Source: Dimorphilus gyrociliatus
Lineage: Eukaryota > Animalia > Annelida
DNA length: 64,000 bases
Reading direction: 5' to 3'
NCBI GenBank assembly: GCA_904063045.1
Contig: CAJFCJ010000022.1
Location: forward strand, 310,001-374,000
A program made the translations under genes and the position numbers. The notes under the pieces were generated by a model, which did not search any database, was not told where the DNA came from, and saw only the letters and a program-made list of their open reading frames with translations. Below are positions 24,983-62,700 of the stretch, one piece after another; position 1 is the first letter of the stretch, and every line of letters starts with the position of its first letter.

Positions 24983-27900
24983 ATGGCGTCGAAGTACAAC
25001 GTTCTACCGCCTATACAAACTGGACAAACTAGAAATTCTTACTCTTTAAATAGTTCAAGACGCGATAGCCCAATTTCTAATCAAAGAAGTCGGTCGGTTC
25101 CTAGTAAGAAGCATGTCTCTCAAGCAAAACTTCCTAGCCTTAGGACTAGGTCGGAATCAGTAAGTTTAAATATTTATTACAAGATTAACAAAGCTTTATA
25201 TCGGAAAATTCGAGATTTATATATTACTAGAAACGTAAGATTATGTTATCGTATTAATATATTAGAAAAATAAGCATTGCCTAGTGTGGATAATCTGAAA
25301 AGAGTTCGACGACTGCACCAAAAAGCGGATAATTTTTATTCAATCCCAAAAAGAATATATATATATAAGTAAATTCAATAATCATTCTCAAGTTAGTAGC
25401 AAAGATCATTTGATATTAATGTATATTTAATTGTACCATTGACAATGGTAGAAAAACTAAATACGGATGATTGGAAAATAGAGTTCCTTTAATTCTCTTT
25501 CGCTTTCTATTAACTATTAGTAGGATAGTGTAAAAAATCTTATTTCGTCAATGATTTTTTAAGCCTGGACGACAAAATCCCTTTTGAAAGATACAAGTAT
25601 GCTATTAAAATAAAAAAAAGGCTTGAGATAGTCTAAATGCTTAAAAGACCAGGGATTTTGTATATTCTGTATATGAACAATAATAAAAGTCATGTTGTCA
25701 AGTGAACTACTTTGCTTTTTTCTCAAGTAAAGCCTATCTATAACCAGCTAATTAGCGAATATTTTATAATGTCAATAAGACAGATACGATGAGCCCCATT
25801 GAAAATGTATTAGACTTTTGCTTTGAAGATTTAACGCTTGATCAGAAGTAATAAGATTTACTGCTAGCAAATATAGCATAAAAGCTCAGTTTGAACAGCA
25901 TTTCTCTTTACCCTTTTAACTGAAAGGGTTTAAGTAATTCCGCAATTATTTGTTACGTAATGGATAATAGTTTACCAATTCATTAGTTCAAATGTAAATA
26001 GAAAATTTATGCATAATTAATAAGGATAATGAAATATTGTATTACAGCCCGATAGTATTCCTAATCCCTACGAAAATACAATATTCGCTAATTACTTTAA
26101 AAATGATGAAAATTTCGTCAAGAGAGTAAGTTTTATTAATTCAATCAAACGTTTTATTTACTATTATTAACTAATTCATTCATATTCCAAAAATAGTCGT
26201 CTTCTGAGGAATGTTTAAAATGTCTTTTAAAAATTAATCACGATAAATGCGAATCGCATAAATATATACGGGTAGGAGGAGGCTATAGGCATAGTTATTG
26301 GTTCGTTAAAGCAATGCTTGAACAAATTGAACTTGAAAGACAGCAAGCCATTTTGATTAAGCAACGTCTTGAAGCGATTGACGAAGGAGATCAATCCAAT
26401 GTTAGAGCTGTAAAAACTTACATCAGGACAAAGAGTGGTAGACTAGTTGAAAAAATGGTTTTTCTTACTGAGGATGAATTTAAAGAGTTTCTCAAGGGTG
26501 GTGAGAATGCCCAAAGAATACTAAAGAAAAATCTTAACAAAGATGAAGCCGCTGGCCTTCAGTCTTGGGAGAAAGAAGAACAGAAAGCCATTACAACACT
26601 AATTAGAACAAAGAGCGGGCGATTAATTCAAAAAACAGTTTACGTATCGAGAGATGAATATGATAAAATTAGAAAAGGTAAGCTAGATGTTAAAGACGTT
26701 ATGAAAAAATACATCAAACCGGAGGAAGGCGTTGTCGAGGGATGGAAAGAGTCGGATATGAAGGCTGTAAAAACGCTAGTCAGGACGAAAAGTGGAAGGT
26801 TAGTTGAAAAAACAATTTTGGTATCTAAAGAAGACTACGATCAACTCAAGGCTGGTGGCGATCCGTCCAAAATTATAGGAAAATATATGTCTACTGAGGA
26901 TGGTGCTAAAATTGAAGGTTGGAAAAAGGATAAAGGCCCAGCCATGAAGGCTGTTAAAATCAAAGTACGTACCAAAAGTGGTAGGCTGGTCGAAAAGACT
27001 GTACTGATGTCTGAAAATGAATATAAAGATTTTATGGAAAGTGGAGGAGACTTAAAACAGTTGAGAAAATTTGTTAAACTTGATAAGGATGACGTTATCG
27101 AAGCTTTCGAAGATGCTGGCGATGTGTACGCCGATTCGGAAGACGAAGAACAATTGAAACAAGCTAAAGAAGGAGAAAGATTTGTTGGAAAAGATGGTGC
27201 TGTCTACGAAGTTTATGTTGATCCTCTTACTGGAAAGAAATACAAAAAGTTTGTATAGGCTTTTAATAATTATAGTCATATTTTAATTATATTTATTTCA
27301 AAAGAAAAATCGGAGGTCCCGGTGATGCTGATGCTCTAATGACAAAAGGTAAAGGTAAAAAAGGCAAAGGAAAAGGAAAAGGAAAAGGAAGAGGTCTTGA
27401 TGAAGATCCAAACGAAAAAGGTATGACCGAAGAAGACAAAAAGAAATATAGGCAAGGAAGGCGAAGAAAGGAGAGCAATGAATCCTTATTTTCATATAAA
27501 TCTTTTGTGTCCGCTGGAGGAACAAGACACGTTAGACGAAAACGCAAAAAGGCTGATGGAACATATAGTGATAGTGAAAGTTATCATAGTGAACTAGATG
27601 CTGAGGGACAAAAAAGAAGACAAAACCGCCGACAAACTCGCAAACAGGCAGCTGTAAAGAAAAAGCTGGAAAAGATTAAAGCTGGAGGCAGACATGATGG
27701 ATCTGATTCAGAGTTCTCTTATCGGTCTGTTATAAGCGCTGGAGGTACCCGGCACGTTAAACGAAAAAAGAAACTGGCCAATGGAACTTATGGAGACGAA
27801 GAATCGTATCATAGTTCTCAAGATGAAGAAGGTAAGAAGAGAAGAAAAGAAAGAAGAAAAAAGAGGGAGGAAGCGATTAAGGAAGGTAAAAGGAATAAGG

Positions 27901-30761
27901 ACTCTGATTCGGAATATTCGTATAAGTCTGTGGTAAGTGCTGGTGGAACACGACATGTGAAAAGAAAGAAAAAGCTTGCAGACGGAACTTATGGTGATGA
28001 GGAATCTTATCATAGTTCTCAGGACGAAGCTGGTAAAGCTAGGCGAAAGGCTAGACGAAAAGAAAGAGCCAAAAAGATGAAAGTAGGAAAGAGAGACCCA
28101 GATAGTGAGAGTGAATATTCGTACAAATCGCATAAAAGTGCCGGTGGAACTAGGCATGTTACACGAAGAAAGAAGTTAGCTGATGGAACTTATGGAGATG
28201 AAGAATCGTATCATAGTTCCCAAGATCCCGACGGCCAAGATAGACGGAGAAGGAGACGTAGGGAAAGGAAACACGCAGGCAGCGCAAATTCATATTACAG
28301 CGTTGTAAGTGCTGGAGGAACGCGTCATGTTAGAAGAAGGAGAAAGAGGAAGGACGGAACCTATAGCCGTAGTGAATCTTATCATAGCTCAGACTCCGAA
28401 TTTTGGGAAGATCCAAAAAATAAAGACAAAAAGAATAAGAAAAGGCACGGCCCTAGTTCTGCCCATAGTTATTATAGCGAGGTAAGCGATGGAGGTACAA
28501 GAAGAAGATTTAGAAAGAAAAAGATTGTTGACAAAGATGGTAAAGTAATTGGTTATGAAGCTGCCGCACCATATGGTAAGAAAAAGCGCCATCTTCTGTA
28601 TTAAAATTTTAAGACATCAATATTTTTTAGTCCTATTTTCTTCATTATTTTATTATATTTAATAAGATAAATTAAGCAATATAATCTGTTTAATTAGTCT
28701 ATTTTCTTTTCATATATCGTCTGTAGAATCGGATTCTGAGTAAGTATAATAAAACATTATATCAATACTGTAAATTCTTGAAACATTGCAAACAAAAATT
28801 CACAACTTAGGCATGAATATATCTACGATAAGGATGGTAAACTACTTGAAAAGAGGAAGAAACCCAAAAATCCTAAAAATCGGAGAATTTCACAAGCGTC
28901 GAAAGACGGTAAAGGAAGAAGAAAGAAGGGAGGAGGGCCAAATGGGAATATGTCTGACTTTAGCGAGGATCTTCTCTCTACCGATTCTGAAGATGAGCCC
29001 GATCTTACAAAGATGACAGAAGAGGAGAAACAAAAATACCTAGAAGAAAAAGCAAAGAGGAAGGCAGAGCGAGAAAGGAAAAGAAAGGAAAAATACGGCG
29101 AAAATTATGAAGAAATGATGGAAAAACATCAAAAGTAATTTAATAAAAGATTTTCTATAACTATAAAATTAAAAAAACTATTTATAGAGCTAAAAAAGCA
29201 TCGAAAGAAGCTAAACGAAAGGCTCAAAATGAAGCTGGAGAAATGGATGACATATCAGGTTTTGGAGGTAAAAAGGGAAGGGGTAAAGGGAAGGGTAAAG
29301 GAGATAACGAGAGTGATACAGGTAAAAAAAAAGATATATTTTTAAGAAAATGACAAAAAACACTTTATAATAATACTCTTGTATAGAGTCGTACACTGAC
29401 GAAAAAGGCGTAAGACGATTAAGAAAGAAGAAGAATGAAGACGAAGAATCAGTATATGATTTTGTAAGTAATTTTTATATTTATTATTTAAATAACCTTG
29501 CGATACATTCTGTATTAGAGGGCTCTTGAAAAGTATTAGTGAAAGAGGTGTGTTGATTTCAATAGGATAACCTCAAAAGGATAAAAAAGGGTGAGGGTTA
29601 AACGAGGGAGTGAAAGGGAAAGAGTAAAAATTCCAGTAAATATATTATATTCTATTTGTACTCTATTGATTAGCTCATTGAAAGTAAGATTTTGTAAATA
29701 TTCGCAATCTATATGAAAAATCATATATACTATACGATAAACGTATAGATATAAATATAGGTAATTTACTACAACTAAATCGCTTGTTTCTAAATTAAAC
29801 ATAAATAGAAAGGAAAAATTGCCAAGAGCATAATAGAAAATTGAATTTCCACTTTGATTTGTCAAATGATAGACGTTCAACTACGATTTTCAATAAAGAA
29901 AGAAGGAAGAAGATGATTTAATACTACAATGTAGGATATATACTGTATATATTCTTCTGTTTGTTTTCCAAGCCAAATTGCATTCTAGCGTGAAAAGTAT
30001 AGGTTTTGTTATAGGAATTTAATTAATGTTTTGTCGATTTAAATAAAAAAAACAAATACTTTTGTTTAGTAATAAAAAAAAAGACCGATAATAAATTCAT
30101 TAAAAGAAATAACATTTTAATACAAAGAGGAAAGAAACTTTCAATAAATAACTACTTATTTCAACTAGTCTAATCTACTTCATTTAATATGTATATTATT
30201 TTGATATTGTTTCTAGGAGAGAGATACTGAGGGTAATATCGTATATGGTGCTGATGGTAAACCAAAACTTAGGAAAATTGGTACTATTAAAAAGGGAGGA
30301 AAAGGCATACCAGACTCTGATGATGAGTACGAATATGTTAGAGATAAGCATGGAAATCTGGTTCGCAAGAAAAAGGACGAGGACGTCGATGGATTTGGTT
30401 CGTTAATTGTTTTGAATATTTGATCGGTTGATTGTCGTCTATCGTTGGAACGTTCAAATCAATAATTATGTCACGTAAAGCTTGTAGATCTATTAATTTT
30501 TTTTTCATTTATCGTAATGGCGTCGAAGCGGCCTAGTATCCATATTCCGCGTTGTTCAACTTCAACTTCGCTAAGTTCATCGGATGACGATTTGACGAAT
30601 AATCGTCCTGTTAAGTCATCTAGCATTAGGCGTTTATGTGACAAAACGAAGAAAATATCATCTAGGCAGTGTAATTCAACTCCAACGATCAAGAAACGAG
30701 AGATAAAACAGGAATGAATAAAAAATAAAGATAGCTAAGAACGTAGATTGTTAAATAGAGT

Positions 30762-38186: not shown

Positions 38187-39299
38187 TTGTTTATTAGTTA
38201 TTAAGTATCATTACTATAAGTCATTTGTTTGAATGCTTTTGTTATTCTATTGTAATATCTATAATAAATTTTCTAATTAACAAGGATTTTAGCAAATTAT
38301 TATATTGTACTAATTAAAATACGATATCCCTTTGAAAAACTATATTTTCTTTACAAAGTAATTAGTATAGGCCTACTTTTAATATTTCTAATAATTTTTG
38401 TCTATATTTTTCCTTTTTTTCCTTGCAGTTTGTAGCTAGCATAAAAGTACAAAGCTTTGCAAAATATAATAAGAGTTATGGTGAACTTGTAAAAAAAATA
38501 TAATCAATTATTTATATTTGAATAGTGCAGTAAACAATTAGCAAACAAAAGCTGAGCACTTTATAAGAAAATCTCCTTGTATTATGTTTTATCTAACGCA
38601 TAATTTTTTCAAAATTATTTAAATGTTGAGAGAGAGCAAGAGAGAGAGAGAGAGAGAGACTGAAAGGGATATAAATAGTGCATATATACTGTATACAATC
38701 ATATGCGAATGAGAATGGAACGGAAAAGAGTAAAAGAAAGACAAATATCTAAAAAAAAATAGCATATACAATATATACATGTGTATTTATTTAGTAAATA
38801 TAAAAGTATGAACAGTATTTTATATCTTCTATAAAGCATTTTCTTATCCTTATAGTCTTTTCATTCATTTATAGTTAAATACATTTTTTATGTATTATTT
38901 TAATAAAAAAAACGAGTATTCTTAATAAATTCTCTATCATTGCAGATCATAGATTTTCTAATACTAATTATATTAATATTCTTGATGGAACAGTAAACAA
39001 AAAATAAAGGGCAGTTTAAAAGTTGAGAAAAGAGTAACAAGCTTTTCCTTATGGTCTATAACAATAGTAGTAGTTATAGTAATATTTATAAACTAGGTAT
39101 AGTTTTTAAGTCTGACATTTACCGAAGGTATAAAATCGATTGATAAATTTATTAGTGTCTATGATACCATATAGACTTCTTGAGGTTATAAAAAGAATTG
39201 AGGTGCTGCGTGGAGAATGTGATTTTTTTTAAATATTTCTCTATATTATCTTTTATTTGAATAATGTAACTTTCATTTTCATATTCGCCATTTGTAAAA

Positions 39300-41072
39300 T
39301 TATATGTGACTATTCCTGCTGTAAGGCGGGGGAGGAGAATCGCGTTCACTTCCTGCTATTATGTTTCTGGGCTGAATTTCAACGTCAGGCAGGTTTGACG
39401 TCCTATCAATGTCATATCTTGAGCTTATCTGTGCTAATCTATCATCATCTCTTCTCTCTGATTGATCTCCTGCCGAAATATTAAGCCTATTATCATCCGG
39501 TGTCGATGATCTCGAGTCAAAAGCAGTCGAATGCAACTCTGCTATTGACTGCTCGTAAGAGGGAGGTGGTGCAATTGAGTCTTCATACTTCGGAGGGGCC
39601 ATAACAACTGCGTTAGATATAGCAAATAATGAAGATTCTGAGAAATGAATTAATGGAGGTTGCGATGAACTTGAAGGTAGAGATAATCGACTTTGAGTTC
39701 TAACAGCTCTTCTCCTAACTCTTGGAGTTGCTAAAGTCTTGTAATAGTGAAATACTATGCGAGATAAGTGGCCAAGCAAAAATACCGTGCAGATGAATAA
39801 GAATAACGCTAACGTGTTTGTCCTATCAAAGCCCTGAAATGAAAAATAAAAGAGAAAATCAAAGAGATGTCCGAATTCTATTGGAATTTCCTAATCGTAG
39901 TACTTTTAAGTATATTTATTATTGAATCTCAAGTTAAAAATAGTAGCATTTTTGTAGATGAGACATAAATTCACCTAATTGATTATTTTCGTTGAAAAGT
40001 ATCTAAAAAAAGAAGAAATCTATGAAAAATTAGAATTAAAATAGATGGAAAAAACGGAATTTTCACTCTTTTTATAATCATCTTTCTTTCTGTATCTCAC
40101 TTCTTTTCACACAGTTAAATAAATTAGTCTTCGGCAGATTTTCCCTTTTGCAAGAGTAAATATGAAAGCATTAAACAAAAGTCTTAATAAAAAACATTAT
40201 AGGAGAAAAGTTCCCTTTCTTTTATTTCTATCTATAGTGTTTTTGGGAGTTTGAGGGGCTTTTCCTACATCAAATAGAAATACGAAGACGACTCTCCACA
40301 AACCTATAATCTATATTCTTATATATATAACAGAATGGATATTACTTTTATTAAAGACTTATCAATAGTTAATTCAATGGGTTATTTAATTTAGCGGATA
40401 AATTAAATGTTATACATAAAATAAATATCTTTAAAGTGTTTGCTAATAATAAATTTATTAGTTATTTAGTTATACTATGCATTTAGTGTGAATTTAATTT
40501 ATAACTACTTAATTTCTCTATCATTCATATTATAACTGTTATATATATGGGTTTTAGAAAAGACTTACTATAAATTTGCAGTCTATCATGAACGTTGAAG
40601 CGGTTAGTACATGCAAAGGCCATAAACTTATTAACCAATACAAAAATAACACTCTGTTCTTTTCCTGAACTCCTTTTATAAGGACAGCAGCTGCTAAAAT
40701 AACCACCGCACACATACATAGAACTGATATGAAAAGGGATCTTTCCAATTCCGCTGTATACAAGTGTTGTTCAACAGCTGTTTGACTCGGTAGAGGACTG
40801 TTCCTCAAACCAATTAGCTTTGTTTTTTCCACATCTGATTTGAAGGCTTGGTATCTTTTTTGAAAAGTTCTTATATCGTAAAGAATATATGCCGAATATC
40901 CAGATAATAGAGAGCATGTAAAGAAGGTTGATGCAGCCGCTACATAGCAGCTATTTCGACTATTCCAACAGAGAAATCCACTTGGATGAAATCTGAAACA
41001 AGACTTATCTCTTGATAATATTCGCCTAGTTCTTTGAACATGAGTTGAGGATAGCCAATATGATTGAGACAT
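39300..41072 (-). CDS. Four-pass LAPTM-like membrane protein with PY-motif tail
   Basis: Two exons, 41072-40569 (ATG to GTAAGT donor, phase 0) and 39833-39300 (after a tttcag acceptor). Four hydrophobic segments, a LAPTM-like LIKGVQEKNRVLFLYWL, and a disordered tail with PPKY, PPSY and PPPY. Confidence 0.85.
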
Positions 41073-42114
41073 ATTTGCTGTAAAATTTTTTGCTGTCTGC
41101 TCCAAGTGCTACATAATGTACTGTATTTTGCACACCCGTATCGATTCCAACACCGTTTACCTTGTCGACGAAGGCGCCGCCAATATTTGTAGCTATGACA
41201 ACAGCAGGTAGGTAACAATCAGACTCTATCACATAAAAATGTTTATTTACTATATTTAGTTATAAAAATTAATTTTGTCAAAAATAGAAGAGAATTCTAT
41301 GCAAAACATAGTTTTGTGTTTAATAAGGATGACAGTAAAAAAAAGCATCCAAGCCAGAAATTTCATTTCGTTTCTTCAATATTGATAAACATTTTGAATA
41401 AATTATAAAAATTGATGAAAAAATAACAAACTTTGACTATTTCAACAGAAAATTATGAAAATTGAATGCTTCGAGGTCATTAAGTCAATATATAACAAAT
41501 AATTAATACGCCTATTACTTAGCCTCAATAGAGTATAGATTCTATTAATTGATAGATGTATGCGAGTATTATGCTAATATGTACATTGCTCAATAATTCT
41601 CTTTTTCTCTTAGGTTTTTTTAAAGACTACAGAAGATAAGAGAGAAGATGAAAAAAGGAGATAAAAAAAATATTTTGATAATTGTTTTAAAAGTAATTAT
41701 TTTTATCGATTTTGAATATCAAATGAAAGATGGAAGGAATTTACTGACTAAGCTATAATAATATTAAAAATATATATATATCTGAGAGGTAAAGTCTGCG
41801 GAGAAGGTCCGTAGAGTCGCGTTTAGAAAAGTGAGAATTTAAATTATTCATTACATTCTTACGTAAACTCTCTAGCCATTTCTTTTGGAAGATAAATTAA
41901 ACGATTACAATATATACTAGTATATACAATTTCAACAATTATGTACTTATAACTACGTATATGTACTTTTAACGTACAGTCTTTCAACTGTTCAATCGAA
42001 AGAATAAATTAATTTCCATAGTTTTCTCAATGTTCAATTGAGAAAATTGAAAGAATTCATTTATTTATGCAAAGAAACATTTAAAAATAGAGAAGAAAGA
42101 TAGATTTTAAAAGA

Positions 42115-42449
42115 TTAATTAAGAAATACAAATGCTGATCTCTTCAATCGCCACGGAGTAGGAGCGCATACCTTCCAAATACATATATTTAATGATGATC
42201 TTTCTATTGGTTTTTTCTTAAAGTTTTCTTTCCAGCCTTTTATTGCTTCTTCATATGAAATTTTCTTTTCTACTAACTTTAAAGTAAAATTTGTTCTATT
42301 AGATTAACTAAAGAGGATATTATTTCAATAAAAGTCTCATATACCTGCTGAAAAGAAGTTTTATCCATTAAATTGGTAATTGGTATAGTTGATATAACAG
42401 TTACAGCTAGAAGAAGCACAAGCCCGAAAAGTCTACTTCTATGGTTCAT
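42115..42449 (-). CDS. Urotensin II/somatostatin-like (CxWKxC) neuropeptide precursor, 88 aa
   Basis: Exon 1 42449-42345 (35 codons, signal peptide MNHRSRLFGLVLLLAVTVIST, CAG/GTATAT donor); 68-nt intron; exon 2 42276-42115 (tttaaag acceptor, phase 0) encoding ...KKKPIER-SSLNICIWKVCAPTPWRL-KR-SAFVFLN*. A further AG acceptor lies 6 nt upstream of the ATG. Confidence 0.88.
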
Positions 42450-44377
42450 ACTGGACTGCAATGAAAGAATTTTTGCATGCCATATCTATTGTTATATTTT
42501 CGATACTTTATATGAAACTGAAGAGAATATTTGACAGCTTGAGTCGACGCATGCAAGCGTACCAGTTAACATGAAAGATATATAAACTGTCTAATTCGTG
42601 TCTATAATTGTTTGGTTTGTAGCCGATATTCTTGTTTTGCAGTTATCAGCATTTTTTATTACTATTATCTTAATAAACACTCACATCCCATGAACATAGC
42701 TACAGGTTTAAAATCTAGATTTATTATTACCGCCATATTTTTGAAACATTATGACACATTTTATGAAATACAAAACTGGTAGTGGCTAATATTCTAATAG
42801 AATTAAGCATATCTTTTCCAGTAAAATTTAAATATAGCTGATCTTTACCAAGAAAGCAGAATTAACAAGATAAAAATACATTAAATTCCTTGTGAGAAAA
42901 GTAATAGTTCTTTTCTTTCTATGCTATTAAAATGTAACGGAAGAGTTTCACCTTATTACTAAATGTTAATACGAATGTATAAAGTATGCACGAGAACGTT
43001 ATGAACGAATGTTACTAAGTGTATAGTAGTACACTTGGAATAAAAATATAAACATGTATACTGTTATCAGGACATATAGATATATAGACATATACACATA
43101 CTGCACAATCGTACTATTTATTAATAAAAATAGAATAAAACACGTTCGTTAAATGCTGCAAAACTGTTGTGATTGAAAAATTCTATTATTTCTCCCCCTA
43201 TCTCCCCCTCTCCCCACCCTCAACTCCTACCTTCTCTCTCTACATAAAGTATTTTGCTATCATTTGAATTTATAAATAAATTAATATTACTAAGCACATG
43301 TGACTTATACTTAATATGGAATAAGCGCCTAAAGCATTTTTATGAAAAGAAACCGGTATAATCAATTTTTGGGTAAATGGACTTTTGCCGTGACTTTGTC
43401 ATTAGTTTGCCCAAAAAAAAATTTAAAGCTTGTGGTTAAAGTCCTCGCGAAAAAATGTGTAAAAATCTGATGCCTTTTTATTCTATTTCTATATTTTGAT
43501 TCCATTTTAGATTTCAAAGAAATGTATTCTATAAAATAAAATGTAAAGAACTGATAATGCAAAGCTATTCGATGAGAAAAGCAAAGGAAATCAGTCGAAT
43601 GTGCAAGCAAATAGTGAGTCTATTTACCAAGGAAAAGAATACTAGAGGGTCTTAGGCCAGAGTAATAAAATACAAAGCTGCAGTAGCGTTAGAAAGAGGC
43701 AAAGAGACAAAAACCATAAAGCAAATAGATAAAATAGTGATATAGGAGGTATTGGGAGGTATTCTTACAAACTACTCCATATTCAACAAAGCAGAATAAA
43801 TAGTGGATTTACCGTCTGGTTTCGCTACTGATTTAATGGTAGGACAAGTGAAAATTTAAAGTTTTAAGATTAAAGCTCTAAACTTCAATAGACATATACA
43901 AATTAGATAAAATAATTTTGGCTTATTTCCACTGTAATCAATCAACAGTAGTTACTTTGCCTAATTCTTAGAGTATATCCAACTGCAAAGCTTCTATTTT
44001 CCTATTATCTTTTATAATGAGTGATGGACAAGGAGGTTTTAGTAATGATTTTTTTAGAGGAAAAACGTTCTTTTGGGTATAAAAAAAAAGGTTATCCTTA
44101 ACTAATTAATCAATCTTTCTTTGACGCATTGCGAATCATTTGTCATCCCCTTTGCTACCGAAATAAAGAATCAGTTTCATCTTAAATTTACCACTTTATA
44201 GGAACAAAATAAAAGAAAGTGAAATTGTATTGTCAACACCAAAAAATGTAATTATGGACGCATGTCACATAGCAAGAATCAAGTTAATAAACGCAACTAC
44301 AGCTCCACCTACCGACCGCAAAATTTTCCACTGGCGCCAATTCTATCGATCCACACACGGAGTCGATATGCGAAAAT

Positions 44378-45676
44378 ATGGCGTCTACTGAACCGTCTTC
44401 TAAAATCCTATATACATTGCTTTTTCTTGCCTCATCTGGAGCCAGTATTGGCTATTCAGCCGTATGGAGTGAAGCAGCAATTCTGGCCGAAAGGCTACCG
44501 GAAGGACGTTATGTATCTATATGCCTTTTCATCCTCTTCAACATATCAAATGGTTTAGCTTTGCTTTATTGCCTGATTTCATTGAAAACAAAGTCGGCTT
44601 CAGCTTGTCAACTAATCACATGCTTAGGACTTTCGAGCATTTCGTCAACTGTTCTCGGGTTTTTTTGGAACCAGACTTTAAAAATTCGAGAAACTCAAAT
44701 CTCCTTAACTGCTTGGTGCTGCATTTTAATTATTTTCACCACCGCTTCATTGCACTCTGTAGCTGCTCCGTTATTTTGTTGGCGTTTACGAGCGTCGAAT
44801 TCGATAACTGCTGTATTGGCTGGCGAATGGTTCGGTTTAGTTATTGGTCACGTGATGATAATAGGACAGAAAATTGAAAAATGTGGACAGAAGCAGAAGG
44901 AAATCGTTAAGCTTAATTCAACATTGTTGAAAGACTCTCGCACGGACACACTGAGATTTAACGTTAACCTTTATATGTTCTTAACCGCTGCACTAACTGT
45001 AGTTGGCGGAATCGCAATAATATTGGCAACAAATTTGAAATGCTTATCAAAGTATTACGAGGATAACAGAAGAGAAAGCGTGCTTATTTTAGATGATGAT
45101 AGTATCCGACATACAACGCCTAGAAAGCAAAAGAAGCCAAGAGAGACGCCAAAACTTCTCTTATTATTAATTATATCCTTTTGGTCAAAATTTGTTAATG
45201 ATGGACCATTGTCATCAGTTCTTTCTCCTGCTTCATGCCCCTATTTATTTTTTTCTACAAAGACTCTTATCGTTGGAACTATAGGTTCCCCCTCTGCCTG
45301 CTTTTTAGCCATGCTTTTACTCCGTCTACTGCCACCACGTTCAAAAATGGCGTCTTTTATTTCTTTACCCTGCTTGGGAACTATACTATTGGCTTATTTT
45401 GTCGCTCTAGCCGCATTTTCATCCAGGAGTGCAGTAGATTCGGCATTATTTACAGGGAGTGGACAAATTTTAACAAGTGTTGCATGGGCCACAGTAGCTT
45501 GCTTGTTGGAATACGGCAGAGGAGGAGTGTTTCTATTTTGTAGAAAACTAAGCATGAAATATTTAATATTTGTCGTTCTAGCAAGTTTATTGGGAAGAAT
45601 AATGGGTTCTTACAGTTTCCTGGAAGATTTTACAGTCTGTAGATTATACAATACGAATAAAAAGGCTCTTTGTTAA
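44378..45676 (+). CDS. SLC52A: SLC52 (riboflavin transporter)-like multipass protein, divergent, intronless
   Basis: About 11 hydrophobic segments. Matches to remembered SLC52 motifs: AVWSEAAILAERLPEG (cf. GIWVELPLLVKELPEG), DGPLSSVLSPASCPY (cf. NGVLPAVQSFSCLPY) and GSPSACFLAM (cf. ANPLACFLAM). Confidence 0.8.
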   Translation: MASTEPSSKILYTLLFLASSGASIGYSAVWSEAAILAERLPEGRYVSICLFILFNISNGLALLYCLISLKTKSASACQLITCLGLSSISSTVLGFFWNQTLKIRETQISLTAWCCILIIFTTASLHSVAAPLFCWRLRASNSITAVLAGEWFGLVIGHVMIIGQKIEKCGQKQKEIVKLNSTLLKDSRTDTLRFNVNLYMFLTAALTVVGGIAIILATNLKCLSKYYEDNRRESVLILDDDSIRHTTPRKQKKPRETPKLLLLLIISFWSKFVNDGPLSSVLSPASCPYLFFSTKTLIVGTIGSPSACFLAMLLLRLLPPRSKMASFISLPCLGTILLAYFVALAAFSSRSAVDSALFTGSGQILTSVAWATVACLLEYGRGGVFLFCRKLSMKYLIFVVLASLLGRIMGSYSFLEDFTVCRLYNTNKKALC

Positions 45677-56384: not shown

Positions 56385-57344
56385 ATGAACGACTCAGATG
56401 ATCTTGAATACATATTTAAAACATATAAAGCGTCTTATCCCCTTATAGCAGTTTATTCAATCGTCATCGCTTTAATATTAACTGGAAATCTGATATGTAT
56501 TGCTGTGATATTCAAATGGAAACAATTACAAACTAATGCAGGATGGTTAATGGTAAATTTATCTATTACTGATACTTTATTTGGTTTAAATCTTGGTATG
56601 AACCCTTTAAGTATTCTTTTTAGCGGTAAATTGCATATGGCCGTATGTAAGATAAATGCTTTATTAGTATCATTCTTTGGTGGTTTATCATTGGCAACAA
56701 TATTTTTATTAAATTTTGACAGATATCTATCAATTACTCGTCCAATGAACTATCATTTCTTAATGTCGAAAAGTAGAACCTTCTTATTAATTGGCTTTGC
56801 TTGGATTTTCTCTGCAATTTTGAATCTACCGTCATGGTTTACGAATAGAGTTTACTTTAATGTCAGTACGATGGTTTGTACGGCGGAAGTTCACAGTAAT
56901 AAAGTATTATGGTTAATTAGTTTATTTTGTTTATTTGGTTTAACTTCCTTTTCCCTTATATATATGTATATAAGACTTTCAATTATAAGTTTCAAAAAAG
57001 GTGTCAAGGGAAACAACAAAAAAGCTCTGAAAACGCTCGTTTTAATGCTTCTCTGCTTCTATCTATCATGGTTTCCAACAGTTTTGAGAATAGTGTTAAA
57101 AGCGAGTAAAGTGAATTTTGACTGGACTGCAATTGGAGAATTACTAATCACCTTAATCTTATTTTTGAACAGTTTCTGGAATTGTTTAATATACGCTTCG
57201 ACCAATCGTACTTTTAAAAGTTATCTACTTAAAACGATTGGTTTAAAATCAGCAACCGTATCTATGAACAACTCTCTTTCAGGAGGTCTTGCTAGGGTAA
57301 TAAATGCTGATACAGACCGGGATGGAGTGTCAATCATTAACTAA
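56385..57344 (+). CDS. Intronless orphan class A (rhodopsin-like) GPCR, copy 1, 319 aa
   Basis: Seven hydrophobic segments. TM1 GN, TM2 NLSITD, TM3 Cys and DRY, TM4 W, TM6 FYLSWFP, TM7 NSFWNCLIY, N-terminal NDS sequon. Confidence 0.92.
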   Translation: MNDSDDLEYIFKTYKASYPLIAVYSIVIALILTGNLICIAVIFKWKQLQTNAGWLMVNLSITDTLFGLNLGMNPLSILFSGKLHMAVCKINALLVSFFGGLSLATIFLLNFDRYLSITRPMNYHFLMSKSRTFLLIGFAWIFSAILNLPSWFTNRVYFNVSTMVCTAEVHSNKVLWLISLFCLFGLTSFSLIYMYIRLSIISFKKGVKGNNKKALKTLVLMLLCFYLSWFPTVLRIVLKASKVNFDWTAIGELLITLILFLNSFWNCLIYASTNRTFKSYLLKTIGLKSATVSMNNSLSGGLARVINADTDRDGVSIIN

Positions 57345-59332: not shown

Positions 59333-60458
59333 AAAAGAATAAATAATAAATATTCATTAAAATCAGTCTAAACCATTTTTTTTATTAATAATACTTAATT
59401 AACTACAATTATTTATTTGTTTTGTTTTTGAGATTTAAAAGAATTTAGTCTTTCTATGATAAAAAAAAAGGTTCACTTTGTTAGTTGACCTTTATAGAGA
59501 CTTTTAAAGAAAATATACTCTGAAAACTTTTTCTAATGCTAAATAAAATACGTAGTGAAGACATAAAATATATTTTTTGCTATCTTCCGGAAATACATCC
59601 GGTATTATAAGTCTATTAATAAATTGTTGATAGATATTCTTCTAATATTTTATATATGCTTGTCCTTTTTTTATATATACACTAGGGACTTAGCTTGTTT
59701 TCTTCAATATCTGTTGAAAAACCTCAAAGAAAACCGTATAAAATAAATTAGGATTTAATTAAAATTTATCTTTGTAAAGCTTCTTTATCTTATAATTCTG
59801 TTCCTAAACAAAGTGTATATAAGACAACTAATTCGTAACCCTATCACTTTTGAAGCCTCGAAGAAATGAAACAGGTAAAAGAAAGGAATGTTTATCAACA
59901 TTCTAAAAGAGGATCAGTAATTTTTAAACAGATTTTTAATACAATACGTATTAGGGAAGACACAGTACAATTTATCAAGAAATTAAACCAGAAAAAAGGA
60001 ACAGATATTTAACGATAGGAGAATTGGGTGGACAGACAAAAGAGAAGGTAATTTAAATAATAAATTATCATACTTCTAAGCTTTACTTGAAATAGAAAGA
60101 AATCTTTCAGCTCTGTATCGACAAGTATTGAGTAGATTGCTTTCGATAGCATGCAATTGTAATAATAAACATCATAATTGATGAAGAAAAAAAGTAGGAA
60201 AGGAAAGAGGATAGAGTAAGAAGAGGGGAAGAGAAGTAGGGGGAGGGGAGTGAAAAGAACAAGGGAGGCAGGGACGATTAAGTGAAAATAGCTCTGCAAT
60301 TTGTAGAAAAGTAGTCTCTTTTGTAAAAGTTTATATTAGATTTGAATGGTTTGTGTATTAGTTAGATTTAAAAATAGAATTTGCTTTTAAAAAGAGTATA
60401 GGTCATGGGGAAAAGAAAGAGAATAAAAAAATTCGTTTGTCCTACCAGATTAACGAAG

Positions 60459-61352
60459 ATGAATGAAACAGAAAATATTTTCAAAGAATATACCATACCA
60501 GCTGCTATAACAATTACATTTACAATCACGACTTTGGTCATCGTCAGTACCAATATAATTTACGCGATCGTAATCATACGGTCAAAAGTTTTGCATAATA
60601 TATCTGGTTATTTGATGTTACATTTATCATTCAGCGATGTTTTACTTGGAATGCTACTTGTCTTTAGTAATTACGCAATCATTATAAATGGAAAACTAGA
60701 ACGGTATGTGTGTGCCCTTACTGCTGTTTGTACTCCCTTGTTGGCTTCTATGTCAGTCTGGACAATTCTCCTACTGAACATTGATCGCTACATCGCTATC
60801 ACTCAACCTTTTTACTATAATCGAATTGTTACTGTGAGAAATATGAGTATAGCGCTGTTGATGACATGGCTTTTGACGTTAAGCTTAAACTTAAGTCTAA
60901 TTATAAAAGGATCGTATACAGTTAACATTTTTACTTTAAAGTGTTCAGCAAGCTTTAAAGATAACAAAATCTTATGGACTGTAATCATCTTGTTTACCTT
61001 TATAATTTCGGTTATAGTATTTGTATTCCTCTATGCCCACCTAGGATACATAGCTACAAAGAGTAAACTATCAGGTTCCAATGTAAAAGCTTTGAGAACA
61101 TTAGCAATGCTTTTTTGTTGCTTTTTTGTTTCTTGGACCCCAATTGTTGTCAACATAGTCTCGAAAGCTACTGGAAAACCGATTAAGATGAATAGAGTTG
61201 GAAATGTCGCTATTTTAGTATTTATGTATATGAATGGGTTTTGGAATTGTGTAATATATGGAGTTACAAACAAACAATTTAAAAGAGAAATCTATAAATT
61301 TCTTGGTATAAAAACAATAAAGATAAGTGATGTTCAAACTTCTTGCACCTAA
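60459..61352 (+). CDS. Intronless orphan class A GPCR, copy 2
   Basis: ORF 60405-61352. The likely start is the second ATG (60459, MNET sequon), 10 nt after a cctaccag acceptor. HLSFSD, DRY, FFVSWTP, NGFWNCVIY. Confidence 0.92.
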   Translation: MNETENIFKEYTIPAAITITFTITTLVIVSTNIIYAIVIIRSKVLHNISGYLMLHLSFSDVLLGMLLVFSNYAIIINGKLERYVCALTAVCTPLLASMSVWTILLLNIDRYIAITQPFYYNRIVTVRNMSIALLMTWLLTLSLNLSLIIKGSYTVNIFTLKCSASFKDNKILWTVIILFTFIISVIVFVFLYAHLGYIATKSKLSGSNVKALRTLAMLFCCFFVSWTPIVVNIVSKATGKPIKMNRVGNVAILVFMYMNGFWNCVIYGVTNKQFKREIYKFLGIKTIKISDVQTSCT

Positions 61353-61797: not shown

Positions 61798-62700
61798 ATG
61801 AACAAATCGGATTATACTTATGATATTCAAACTGTACCAGCATTTATAACTATTACCTATAGCTTAGTTTGTTTCATTACAGTTCTTTTCAATGTGACAT
61901 ACATGATTGTTATTTTACGAAGGAAAGTAATGCATAACCCTCCTGGTTGGCTTATGATGCATCTATCGTTCAGCGATCTTCTACTTGGTCTATCTTTGAA
62001 TTTAAATGTTTACGTTATTTTGCTAAACGAGAGGACTGTACCTTTTGCATGCTTCCTTTCAGCGCTTTGTCCCGTATTATTATCTGGAACATCAATGTGG
62101 ACTCTTTTAATCTTAAATTTTGATAGATATATTGCTATTACAAAACCGTTTTATTATGAAAGAATATCGAATGGAAGGAATGTTCTAATTAGCATAATAA
62201 TTATTTGGATTGTTAATTTGACTACAAGTTTGACCTTAGCAATAAGAGGACGACAGATAATGAATATCAAAACGTATCAGTGTGTTACAGAATTTGAATA
62301 TAACGCGGAAATTTGGTTGTTTGCAATATCAGTGACTTATGGTGGAACTGGTATCTCTTTAATTTTTATGTATTCTCATTTGATTTGTATAGCTATAAAA
62401 AAGAAAGGACTTAAAAGGAGTAACAAGAAAGCCTTAAGAACTCTCTTACTTTTATTGTTCTTTTTCTATCTTGCCTGGACGCCAATTATATCCAATGTTA
62501 TATCAAAATCTCTAGGGAAGCCATTGAAAGTTAATCAAAACATAAACGTTATTCTAATTATTCTTATGTACTTGAATGGAGCGTATAATTGTATTATCTA
62601 TACAGCAACAAATAATAAATTCAAAATTGAACTATTTAAGTTTTTCGGTATCAAATCGTCGTCAGTAAGTGACTGTCACATTAGTGAATACAGAAGATAG
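61798..62700 (+). CDS. Intronless orphan class A GPCR, copy 3, 300 aa
   Basis: MNKS sequon, HLSFSD, DRY, FYLAWTP, NGAYNCIIY. A ctcctag acceptor lies 9 nt upstream of the ATG. Clearly paralogous to copies 1 and 2. Confidence 0.92.
   Translation: MNKSDYTYDIQTVPAFITITYSLVCFITVLFNVTYMIVILRRKVMHNPPGWLMMHLSFSDLLLGLSLNLNVYVILLNERTVPFACFLSALCPVLLSGTSMWTLLILNFDRYIAITKPFYYERISNGRNVLISIIIIWIVNLTTSLTLAIRGRQIMNIKTYQCVTEFEYNAEIWLFAISVTYGGTGISLIFMYSHLICIAIKKKGLKRSNKKALRTLLLLLFFFYLAWTPIISNVISKSLGKPLKVNQNINVILIILMYLNGAYNCIIYTATNNKFKIELFKFFGIKSSSVSDCHISEYRR

Follow-up and report, generated by a model that had tools for sequence, protein, structure and literature searches.

The closest described relatives of the gene analysed here belong to the SSRP-like neuropeptide family, which has been described for molluscs (2012) and, formally, for annelids including Dimorphilus gyrociliatus (2022). 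In Aplysia, the urotensin II-like peptide apUII' has the sequence SGGMSLCLWKVCPAAPWLIS, with a disulfide established by tandem MS (Romanova et al. 2012, PMC3493602). It is freed at a monobasic Arg and inhibits feeding motor programmes, and both long and short apUII forms were observed by MS (PMC3493602). The initial annotation of the locus had cited an Aplysia peptide with a CLWKVC core and a C-terminal extension containing Pro and Trp, which corresponds to apUII' as published (PMC3493602). Koch et al. [quoted passage not shown]

The peptides of this family share a four-residue loop containing WK, an aliphatic residue (I/V/L) before the W, a Pro-rich C-terminal extension with a single Trp, and Gly/Ser at the N-terminus (PMC9048919). 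The canonical molluscan/annelid gene is interrupted by two introns, one of phase 0 and one of phase 1, and encodes the ring on exon 3; the second, phase-1 intron splits the mature peptide ahead of the WK loop, and every SSRP, SSRP-like and ASTC gene examined has the phase-0 pro-region intron (PMC9048919). Three SSRP-like genes were reported in D. gyrociliatus, two of which lack the second intron, and in CLANS analysis the lophotrochozoan SSRP-like precursors group with UII/URP (PMC9048919). The Capitella receptor Ct-SSTL1 was deorphanised by its activation with Ct-SSRPL1 at an EC50 of 13.1 nM (PMC9048919). The ligand is near-identical to the D. gyrociliatus peptide described below, so that the suggestion in the initial annotation that the receptor in this lineage may be unknown no longer holds in principle.

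The D. gyrociliatus neuropeptide gene was analysed within a stretch of 64,000 nt (the window; assembly GCA_904063045.1), to which all coordinates refer and from which the coordinates of contig CAJFCJ010000022.1 are obtained by adding 310000. It lies on the minus strand and has two exons encoding an 88-aa product, with the start ATG at 42449-42447 (-) and an A at position -3. Coding exon 1 (42345-42449, -; 35 codons) contains the start codon, the signal peptide and the start of the pro-region. The following 68-nt phase-0 intron within the pro-region (42277-42344, -; GTATAT...TTAAAG, GT..AG) falls directly after codon 35, between complete codons, and is exactly removed in an RNA contig. Coding exon 2 (42115-42276, -; 53 codons plus TAA) encodes the spacer, the cleavage sites, the peptide and the C-terminal tail, with the RNA contig lying on 42276-42155 only. 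The whole mature peptide is contiguous on exon 2, and the second (phase-1) intron is absent. The initial annotation had proposed the same two exons, 68-nt GT-AG phase-0 intron and 88-aa length, and every coordinate was correct. It had also stated that the ORF track holds just exon 1 with read-through into the intron, as is the case (42279-42461, 60 aa); exon 2, which encodes the peptide, lacks an in-frame start codon, and this is why the ORF list misses it. A predicted poly(A) signal, AATAAA (42060-42065, -), lies 50 nt 3' of the stop and is the sole canonical one within 300 nt past the stop.

The signal peptide and the cleavage sites were judged by rules (hydropathy, the -3/-1 rule and basic residues). 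The putative signal peptide in exon 1 (within 42345-42449, -) consists of the n-region MNHRSR and a 13-residue hydrophobic core, and is probably cut after S20 or T21. KKK at residues 55-57 (42211-42219, -) is a predicted upstream cleavage site; as in Aplysia, where apUII occurs in a long and a short form, a cut there is predicted to yield a long form in which PIER precedes the peptide. Arg61 (42199-42201, -), which abuts the peptide N-terminus and has Lys at P5-P7, is a predicted monobasic cleavage site by analogy with apUII', whose monobasic Arg occupies the equivalent position. The predicted mature peptide, SSLNICIWKVCAPTPWRL, comprises residues 62-79 (18 aa; 42145-42198, -) with a Cys6-Cys11 disulfide, as judged from the sequence and from the alignment with Capitella, Aplysia and Conus peptides. 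Its ring, CIWKVC (42166-42183, -), has four residues between the cysteines and an aliphatic residue preceding the W of the WK motif; SSLNI stands ahead of the ring and APTPWRL after it. KR at residues 80-81 (42139-42144, -) forms R-L-K-R together with R78 and is the predicted downstream cleavage site. It is followed by the C-terminal flanking heptapeptide SAFVFLN (42118-42138, -), which is outside the RNA contigs, and by the stop at 42117-42115. The order of signal peptide, spacer, KKK, monobasic R, peptide and KR is thus the one first proposed. The calculated [M+H]+ values are 2085.08 for the 18-mer with the disulfide and 2580.36 for the PIER-extended 22-mer.

Transcription and splicing were assessed with the Logan contigs of run X1, the sole public run found to contain the stretch (word share of the run, 0.56). 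X1 contigs were absent from the flanks, and run X1 therefore behaves as RNA. A spliced X1 contig (depth 145.8, zero mismatches) lies on 42155-42276 and 42345-42374 and skips exactly 42277-42344, the gap ends being CT..AC on the plus strand and hence GT..AG on the minus strand. Spliced RNA across 42344/42277, which the initial annotation had put forward as a check, was thereby found, with 42345 joined exactly to 42276. A second X1 contig is unbroken on 42345-42645 (mean depth 66.8) and includes exon 1 and a transcribed leader (42450-42645, -), giving a minimum 5' UTR of 196 nt with four upstream ATGs. Given the mean depth of 66.8 for the leader contig versus 145.8 for the spliced contig, the far leader is probably thinly covered, and most mRNAs probably start closer to the main ATG than 42645. 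The upstream ATGs at 42572, 42552, 42483 and 42478 (-) open short ORFs of 10-26 codons, and the ORFs from 42483 and 42478 extend beyond the main ATG; they may point to start-site heterogeneity or translational control.

No X1 contig covers 42154-42035, a stretch holding the final 13 codons together with the 3' UTR, and the word share of 0.56 fits a real absence there. Support for the end of the CDS (W, RL, KR, tail and stop) therefore comes from the genomic sequence and from the PTPW/dibasic pattern seen in the relatives. One alternative is that the gene is real and has a different 3' end, exon 2 stopping at 42155 and being spliced to a further exon, which would change both the C-terminus of the peptide and its downstream cleavage site. 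The spliced contig indeed ends at 42155, midway through the Pro41 codon of exon 2, with GT following in the genome, and no X1 contig lies on 42154-41700, again as the word share would fit. However, the GTGGCG that follows 42155 is a poor donor compared with the GTATAT of the gene itself, and genomic read-through past 42155 gives PTPW, which is exactly the Capitella C-terminus, and then a dibasic site like that of the relatives. The AATAAA 50 nt after the stop also argues against an alternative 3' exon. Assemblers clip short dead-end tips, and the gap in the contigs at 42154 proves nothing. An onward-spliced exon 2 is considered improbable.

An additional 820-letter X1 contig (mean depth 55.7) contains exon 1 and the first 42 nt of the intron, continues at 41692 and reaches ~40945. 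The 42303|41692 join skips 610 nt (42302-41693) including exon 2, and its minus-strand ends are CT..AC, which are non-canonical; flanking direct repeats at the join were sought and none were found. The join is most likely a chimeric one with transcripts from below 41692, and it could also be a deletion allele or an odd isoform. Read as a deletion, the contig would favour a decaying or partly null copy in which some chromosomes or transcripts lack the peptide exon in the 610-nt gap and no functional peptide is made from them. Against this, the intact spliced form is deeper (145.8), the depth of a contig being a mean over its full length, and the gene retains an intact reading frame, both its cysteines, the WK pair and all cleavage sites. 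Moreover, a join with neither canonical intron ends nor a flanking repeat is what would be expected for a chimeric read or assembly join. A decaying copy is thus very improbable, even more so than a different 3' end.

Returning to the two-exon gene ending at 42115, we compared its product with the published family features. The four-residue Cys loop with WK is present (CIWKVC, 42183-42166), as are the aliphatic residue before WK (IWK) and the Pro-rich C-terminal extension with a single Trp; at the N-terminus there is Ser and no Gly. By rule-based assessment, the precursor has n, h and c regions, sites obeying the -3/-1 rule after residues 20 and 21, KKK, R61 and KR. The gene has the phase-0 pro-region intron, which is used in RNA, and carries the signal sequence on exon 1. 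It has no second phase-1 intron as in the three-exon SSRP-like form, which is still no disqualification because two of the three published D. gyrociliatus SSRP-like genes lack it too. In an alignment with the mature peptides of Capitella, Aplysia and Conus quoted in the papers, C, W, K, V, C, P and W were invariant. With the features of Koch et al. 2022 present, the earlier assignment to a protostome UII/somatostatin-related family was right.

The nearest counterpart is Capitella teleta Ct-SSRPL1 (pQASSGAQICIWKVCPPTPW; PMC9048919), from the same phylum, which has the same ring size, is identical at 11/12 positions of the core ICIWKVC.PTPW and shares a Ser-rich N-terminal arm. Unlike the D. gyrociliatus peptide, whose N-terminus is set by the monobasic Arg and which has an extra RL before KR, Ct-SSRPL1 has an N-terminal pyroGlu and ends at W. 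The first residue past the ring is A in D. gyrociliatus and P in Ct-SSRPL1, and the receptor activation data come from the Capitella peptide. The D. gyrociliatus genes of Koch et al. are of the same species and family, and two of the three share the two-exon structure found here. Aplysia apUII/apUII' (PMC3493602) and Conus SSRP-like 1 (Cr-SSRPL1) share the C[L/I]WKVC ring, a Pro/Ala stretch and PW followed by 2-3 residues, together with monobasic-Arg release and an N-terminal Ser, with ~35% identity to the D. gyrociliatus peptide over the aligned region. In contrast to the molluscan SSRP-like genes, in which three coding exons are present and the ring is on exon 3, the D. gyrociliatus peptide is wholly on exon 2.

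Vertebrate urotensin II and URP likewise have a Cys ring of six residues in which W-K occupies positions 3-4, but their ring is CFWKYC (aromatic at ring positions 2 and 5), they have scarcely any C-terminal extension, and their genes contain extra phase-1 introns. The vertebrate urotensin II pattern of CFWKYC near the precursor C-terminus with a match to Pfam Urotensin_II was not seen in the D. gyrociliatus precursor: after its ring CIWKVC the peptide goes on for 7 residues, followed by KR and a further 7 residues, and Pfam gave zero matches at E up to 10. Somatostatin and cortistatin also present a W-K pharmacophore in a disulfide loop and have a single phase-0 pro-region intron, whereas they carry FWKT rather than IWKV and have loops of 10-15 residues (SS/CST, echinoderm SS2). 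Consomatins of cone-snail venom derive from the molluscan SSRP-like gene and have the WK motif and the loop in common with the peptide described here. They are toxins of the venom gland and evolve under positive selection, whereas the D. gyrociliatus gene is an endogenous annelid gene. The annelid SSRP-like system is likely of the sort that worm-hunting cone snails target in their prey.

An allatostatin-C-type precursor would likewise encode a small cyclic peptide and have a phase-0 pro-region intron. However, protostome ASTC peptides always have six loop residues, in most cases including Asn and often FxP, and lack WK (PMC9048919), whereas the loop here has four residues with WK. In addition, the genome paper lists ASTC 1 and 2 of D. 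gyrociliatus, which are different peptides (CLVNIVSCW and CLVNIVACW). Loop size and motif thus refute an ASTC identity, whose probability is negligible.

The word-index protein search with exon 2, and with a 62-aa stop-free reference for wider lengths (candidates of at most 108 aa), gave no candidate. Exhaustive HMMER against 1.84 billion representatives gave four matches only, all giant repeat proteins. These were rejected as spurious, their scores being summed over many weak stretches, and the two inspected (P0001 and P0004) had no Cys ring. The best ESM Atlas score, 0.66, was noise, and the JGI metagenome scan gave pattern matches, none of which was confirmed. A lack of significant homologues is usual for precursors of this size. 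As no search returned a significant homologue, the family assignment rests on the match of the 18-residue motif to peptides quoted in papers. Within the searchable literature text, CIWKVC occurred in the Capitella peptide alone, and IWKVCA, which is specific to the D. gyrociliatus peptide, was not found.

Six-frame translation of the 64-kb window gave a single C.WK.C, against 0.07 occurrences expected from 300 Markov-shuffled windows, and the extended motif C[ILV]WK[VILTA]C..PW (PW 2-4 residues past the ring) occurred in 0 of the 300 shuffled windows. A chance ORF in AT-rich non-coding DNA, which could be suspected from its shortness, the missing gene call and the lack of a database homologue, is refuted by the spliced, high-depth transcript contig, by a motif expectation of at most 0.07 per window with the extended motif in none of the 300 shuffles, and by the co-occurrence of signal peptide, cleavage sites and family motif, and its probability is vanishingly small.

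The sequence, the splice, bulk transcription and the match to the published family features were observed directly, and the locus is, very probably, an expressed two-exon D. gyrociliatus gene for a protostome SSRP-like ('urotensin II-like') neuropeptide precursor that would act as follows. The signal peptide would route the 88-aa precursor to the secretory pathway, where prohormone convertases would cleave it at RLKR as well as at KKK, Arg61 or both, after which a carboxypeptidase would remove the basic residues. The expected product is SSLNICIWKVCAPTPWRL, perhaps accompanied by the PIER-extended form. The Cys-Cys disulfide would close the six-residue ring and present the Trp-Lys pair. The peptide would be released from neurons and target a rhodopsin-type GPCR, the orthologue of Capitella Ct-SSTL1. 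Its most likely role, going by the analogy of Aplysia apUII, is that of an inhibitory modulator.

The gene is lacking from both the public annotation and the neuropeptide list of the genome paper. No gene call on CAJFCJ010000022.1 lies between window positions 38187 and 44377, as anticipated in the initial annotation, which had judged the gene small enough for automated annotation to miss. The neuropeptide precursor list of the genome paper contains neither a C[ILMVF]WK string nor a match to the N-terminus of the precursor. [quoted passage not shown] 2022 reported from D. gyrociliatus; if so, it is most probably one of the two without the second phase-1 intron. A further, unreported D. gyrociliatus SSRP-like paralogue beyond the three published in 2022 is distinctly less likely. 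If true, it would mean more SSRP-like genes than reported in a miniature, gene-poor genome, and would be unexpected for an animal described as having merely a 'canonical' neuropeptide complement.

The public gene list is hereby corrected by one expressed gene. Proteomic, single-cell and connectome-style work on D. gyrociliatus that uses the current list would miss a conserved inhibitory-type peptide system, and the exact masses and coordinates are supplied for peptide detection and for in situ probes. The locus also provides a clean RNA-supported case of the intron-poor SSRP-like gene form. No new question is opened by it, as the family, its relation to somatostatin and urotensin II and the annelid receptor are all published already.

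Several features of the surrounding window were recorded. An intronless SLC52 riboflavin-transporter ORF at 44378-45676 neighbours the neuropeptide gene, and its protein matches CAJFCJ010000022.1 of the published D. gyrociliatus assembly GCA_904063045.1 with exact identity. The 68-nt intron and the 29% G+C agree with this origin. On the other side, the 6.2-kb stretch without gene calls holds uncalled ORFs at 39300-41218 (-), including one of 183 aa with hydrophobic segments (40554-41105, -) and one of 159 aa with two PPxY-like motifs (39300-39779, -), neither of which matches Pfam. The 820-letter X1 contig indicates that at least 40945-41692 is transcribed, and a second overlooked gene with several exons may lie at 39300-41218 (-), immediately downstream of the neuropeptide gene. 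At 26314-28604 (+), two long ORFs of 314 and 421 aa lie side by side in a region with strong G and A skew, and their Pfam matches are all sub-threshold.

Three tandem intronless ORFs for rhodopsin-class GPCRs of 300-319 aa are located at 56385-57344, 60405-61352 and 61798-62700 (+), 14-20 kb from the neuropeptide gene, and all match Pfam 7tm_1 (E 1e-25 to 1e-30). The best solved relatives of the ORFs at 56385-57344 and 61798-62700 are trace-amine, 5-HT and orphan GPR21/52 receptors, at no better than E 1e-14 to 1e-15. These ORFs were rejected as the cognate receptor of the peptide, the two compared with structures being aminergic/orphan-like rather than SST/UT/opioid and the one at 60405-61352 having been assessed by Pfam scan only. 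The three GPCR ORFs look like a lineage-specific cluster that is not of the somatostatin/urotensin type.
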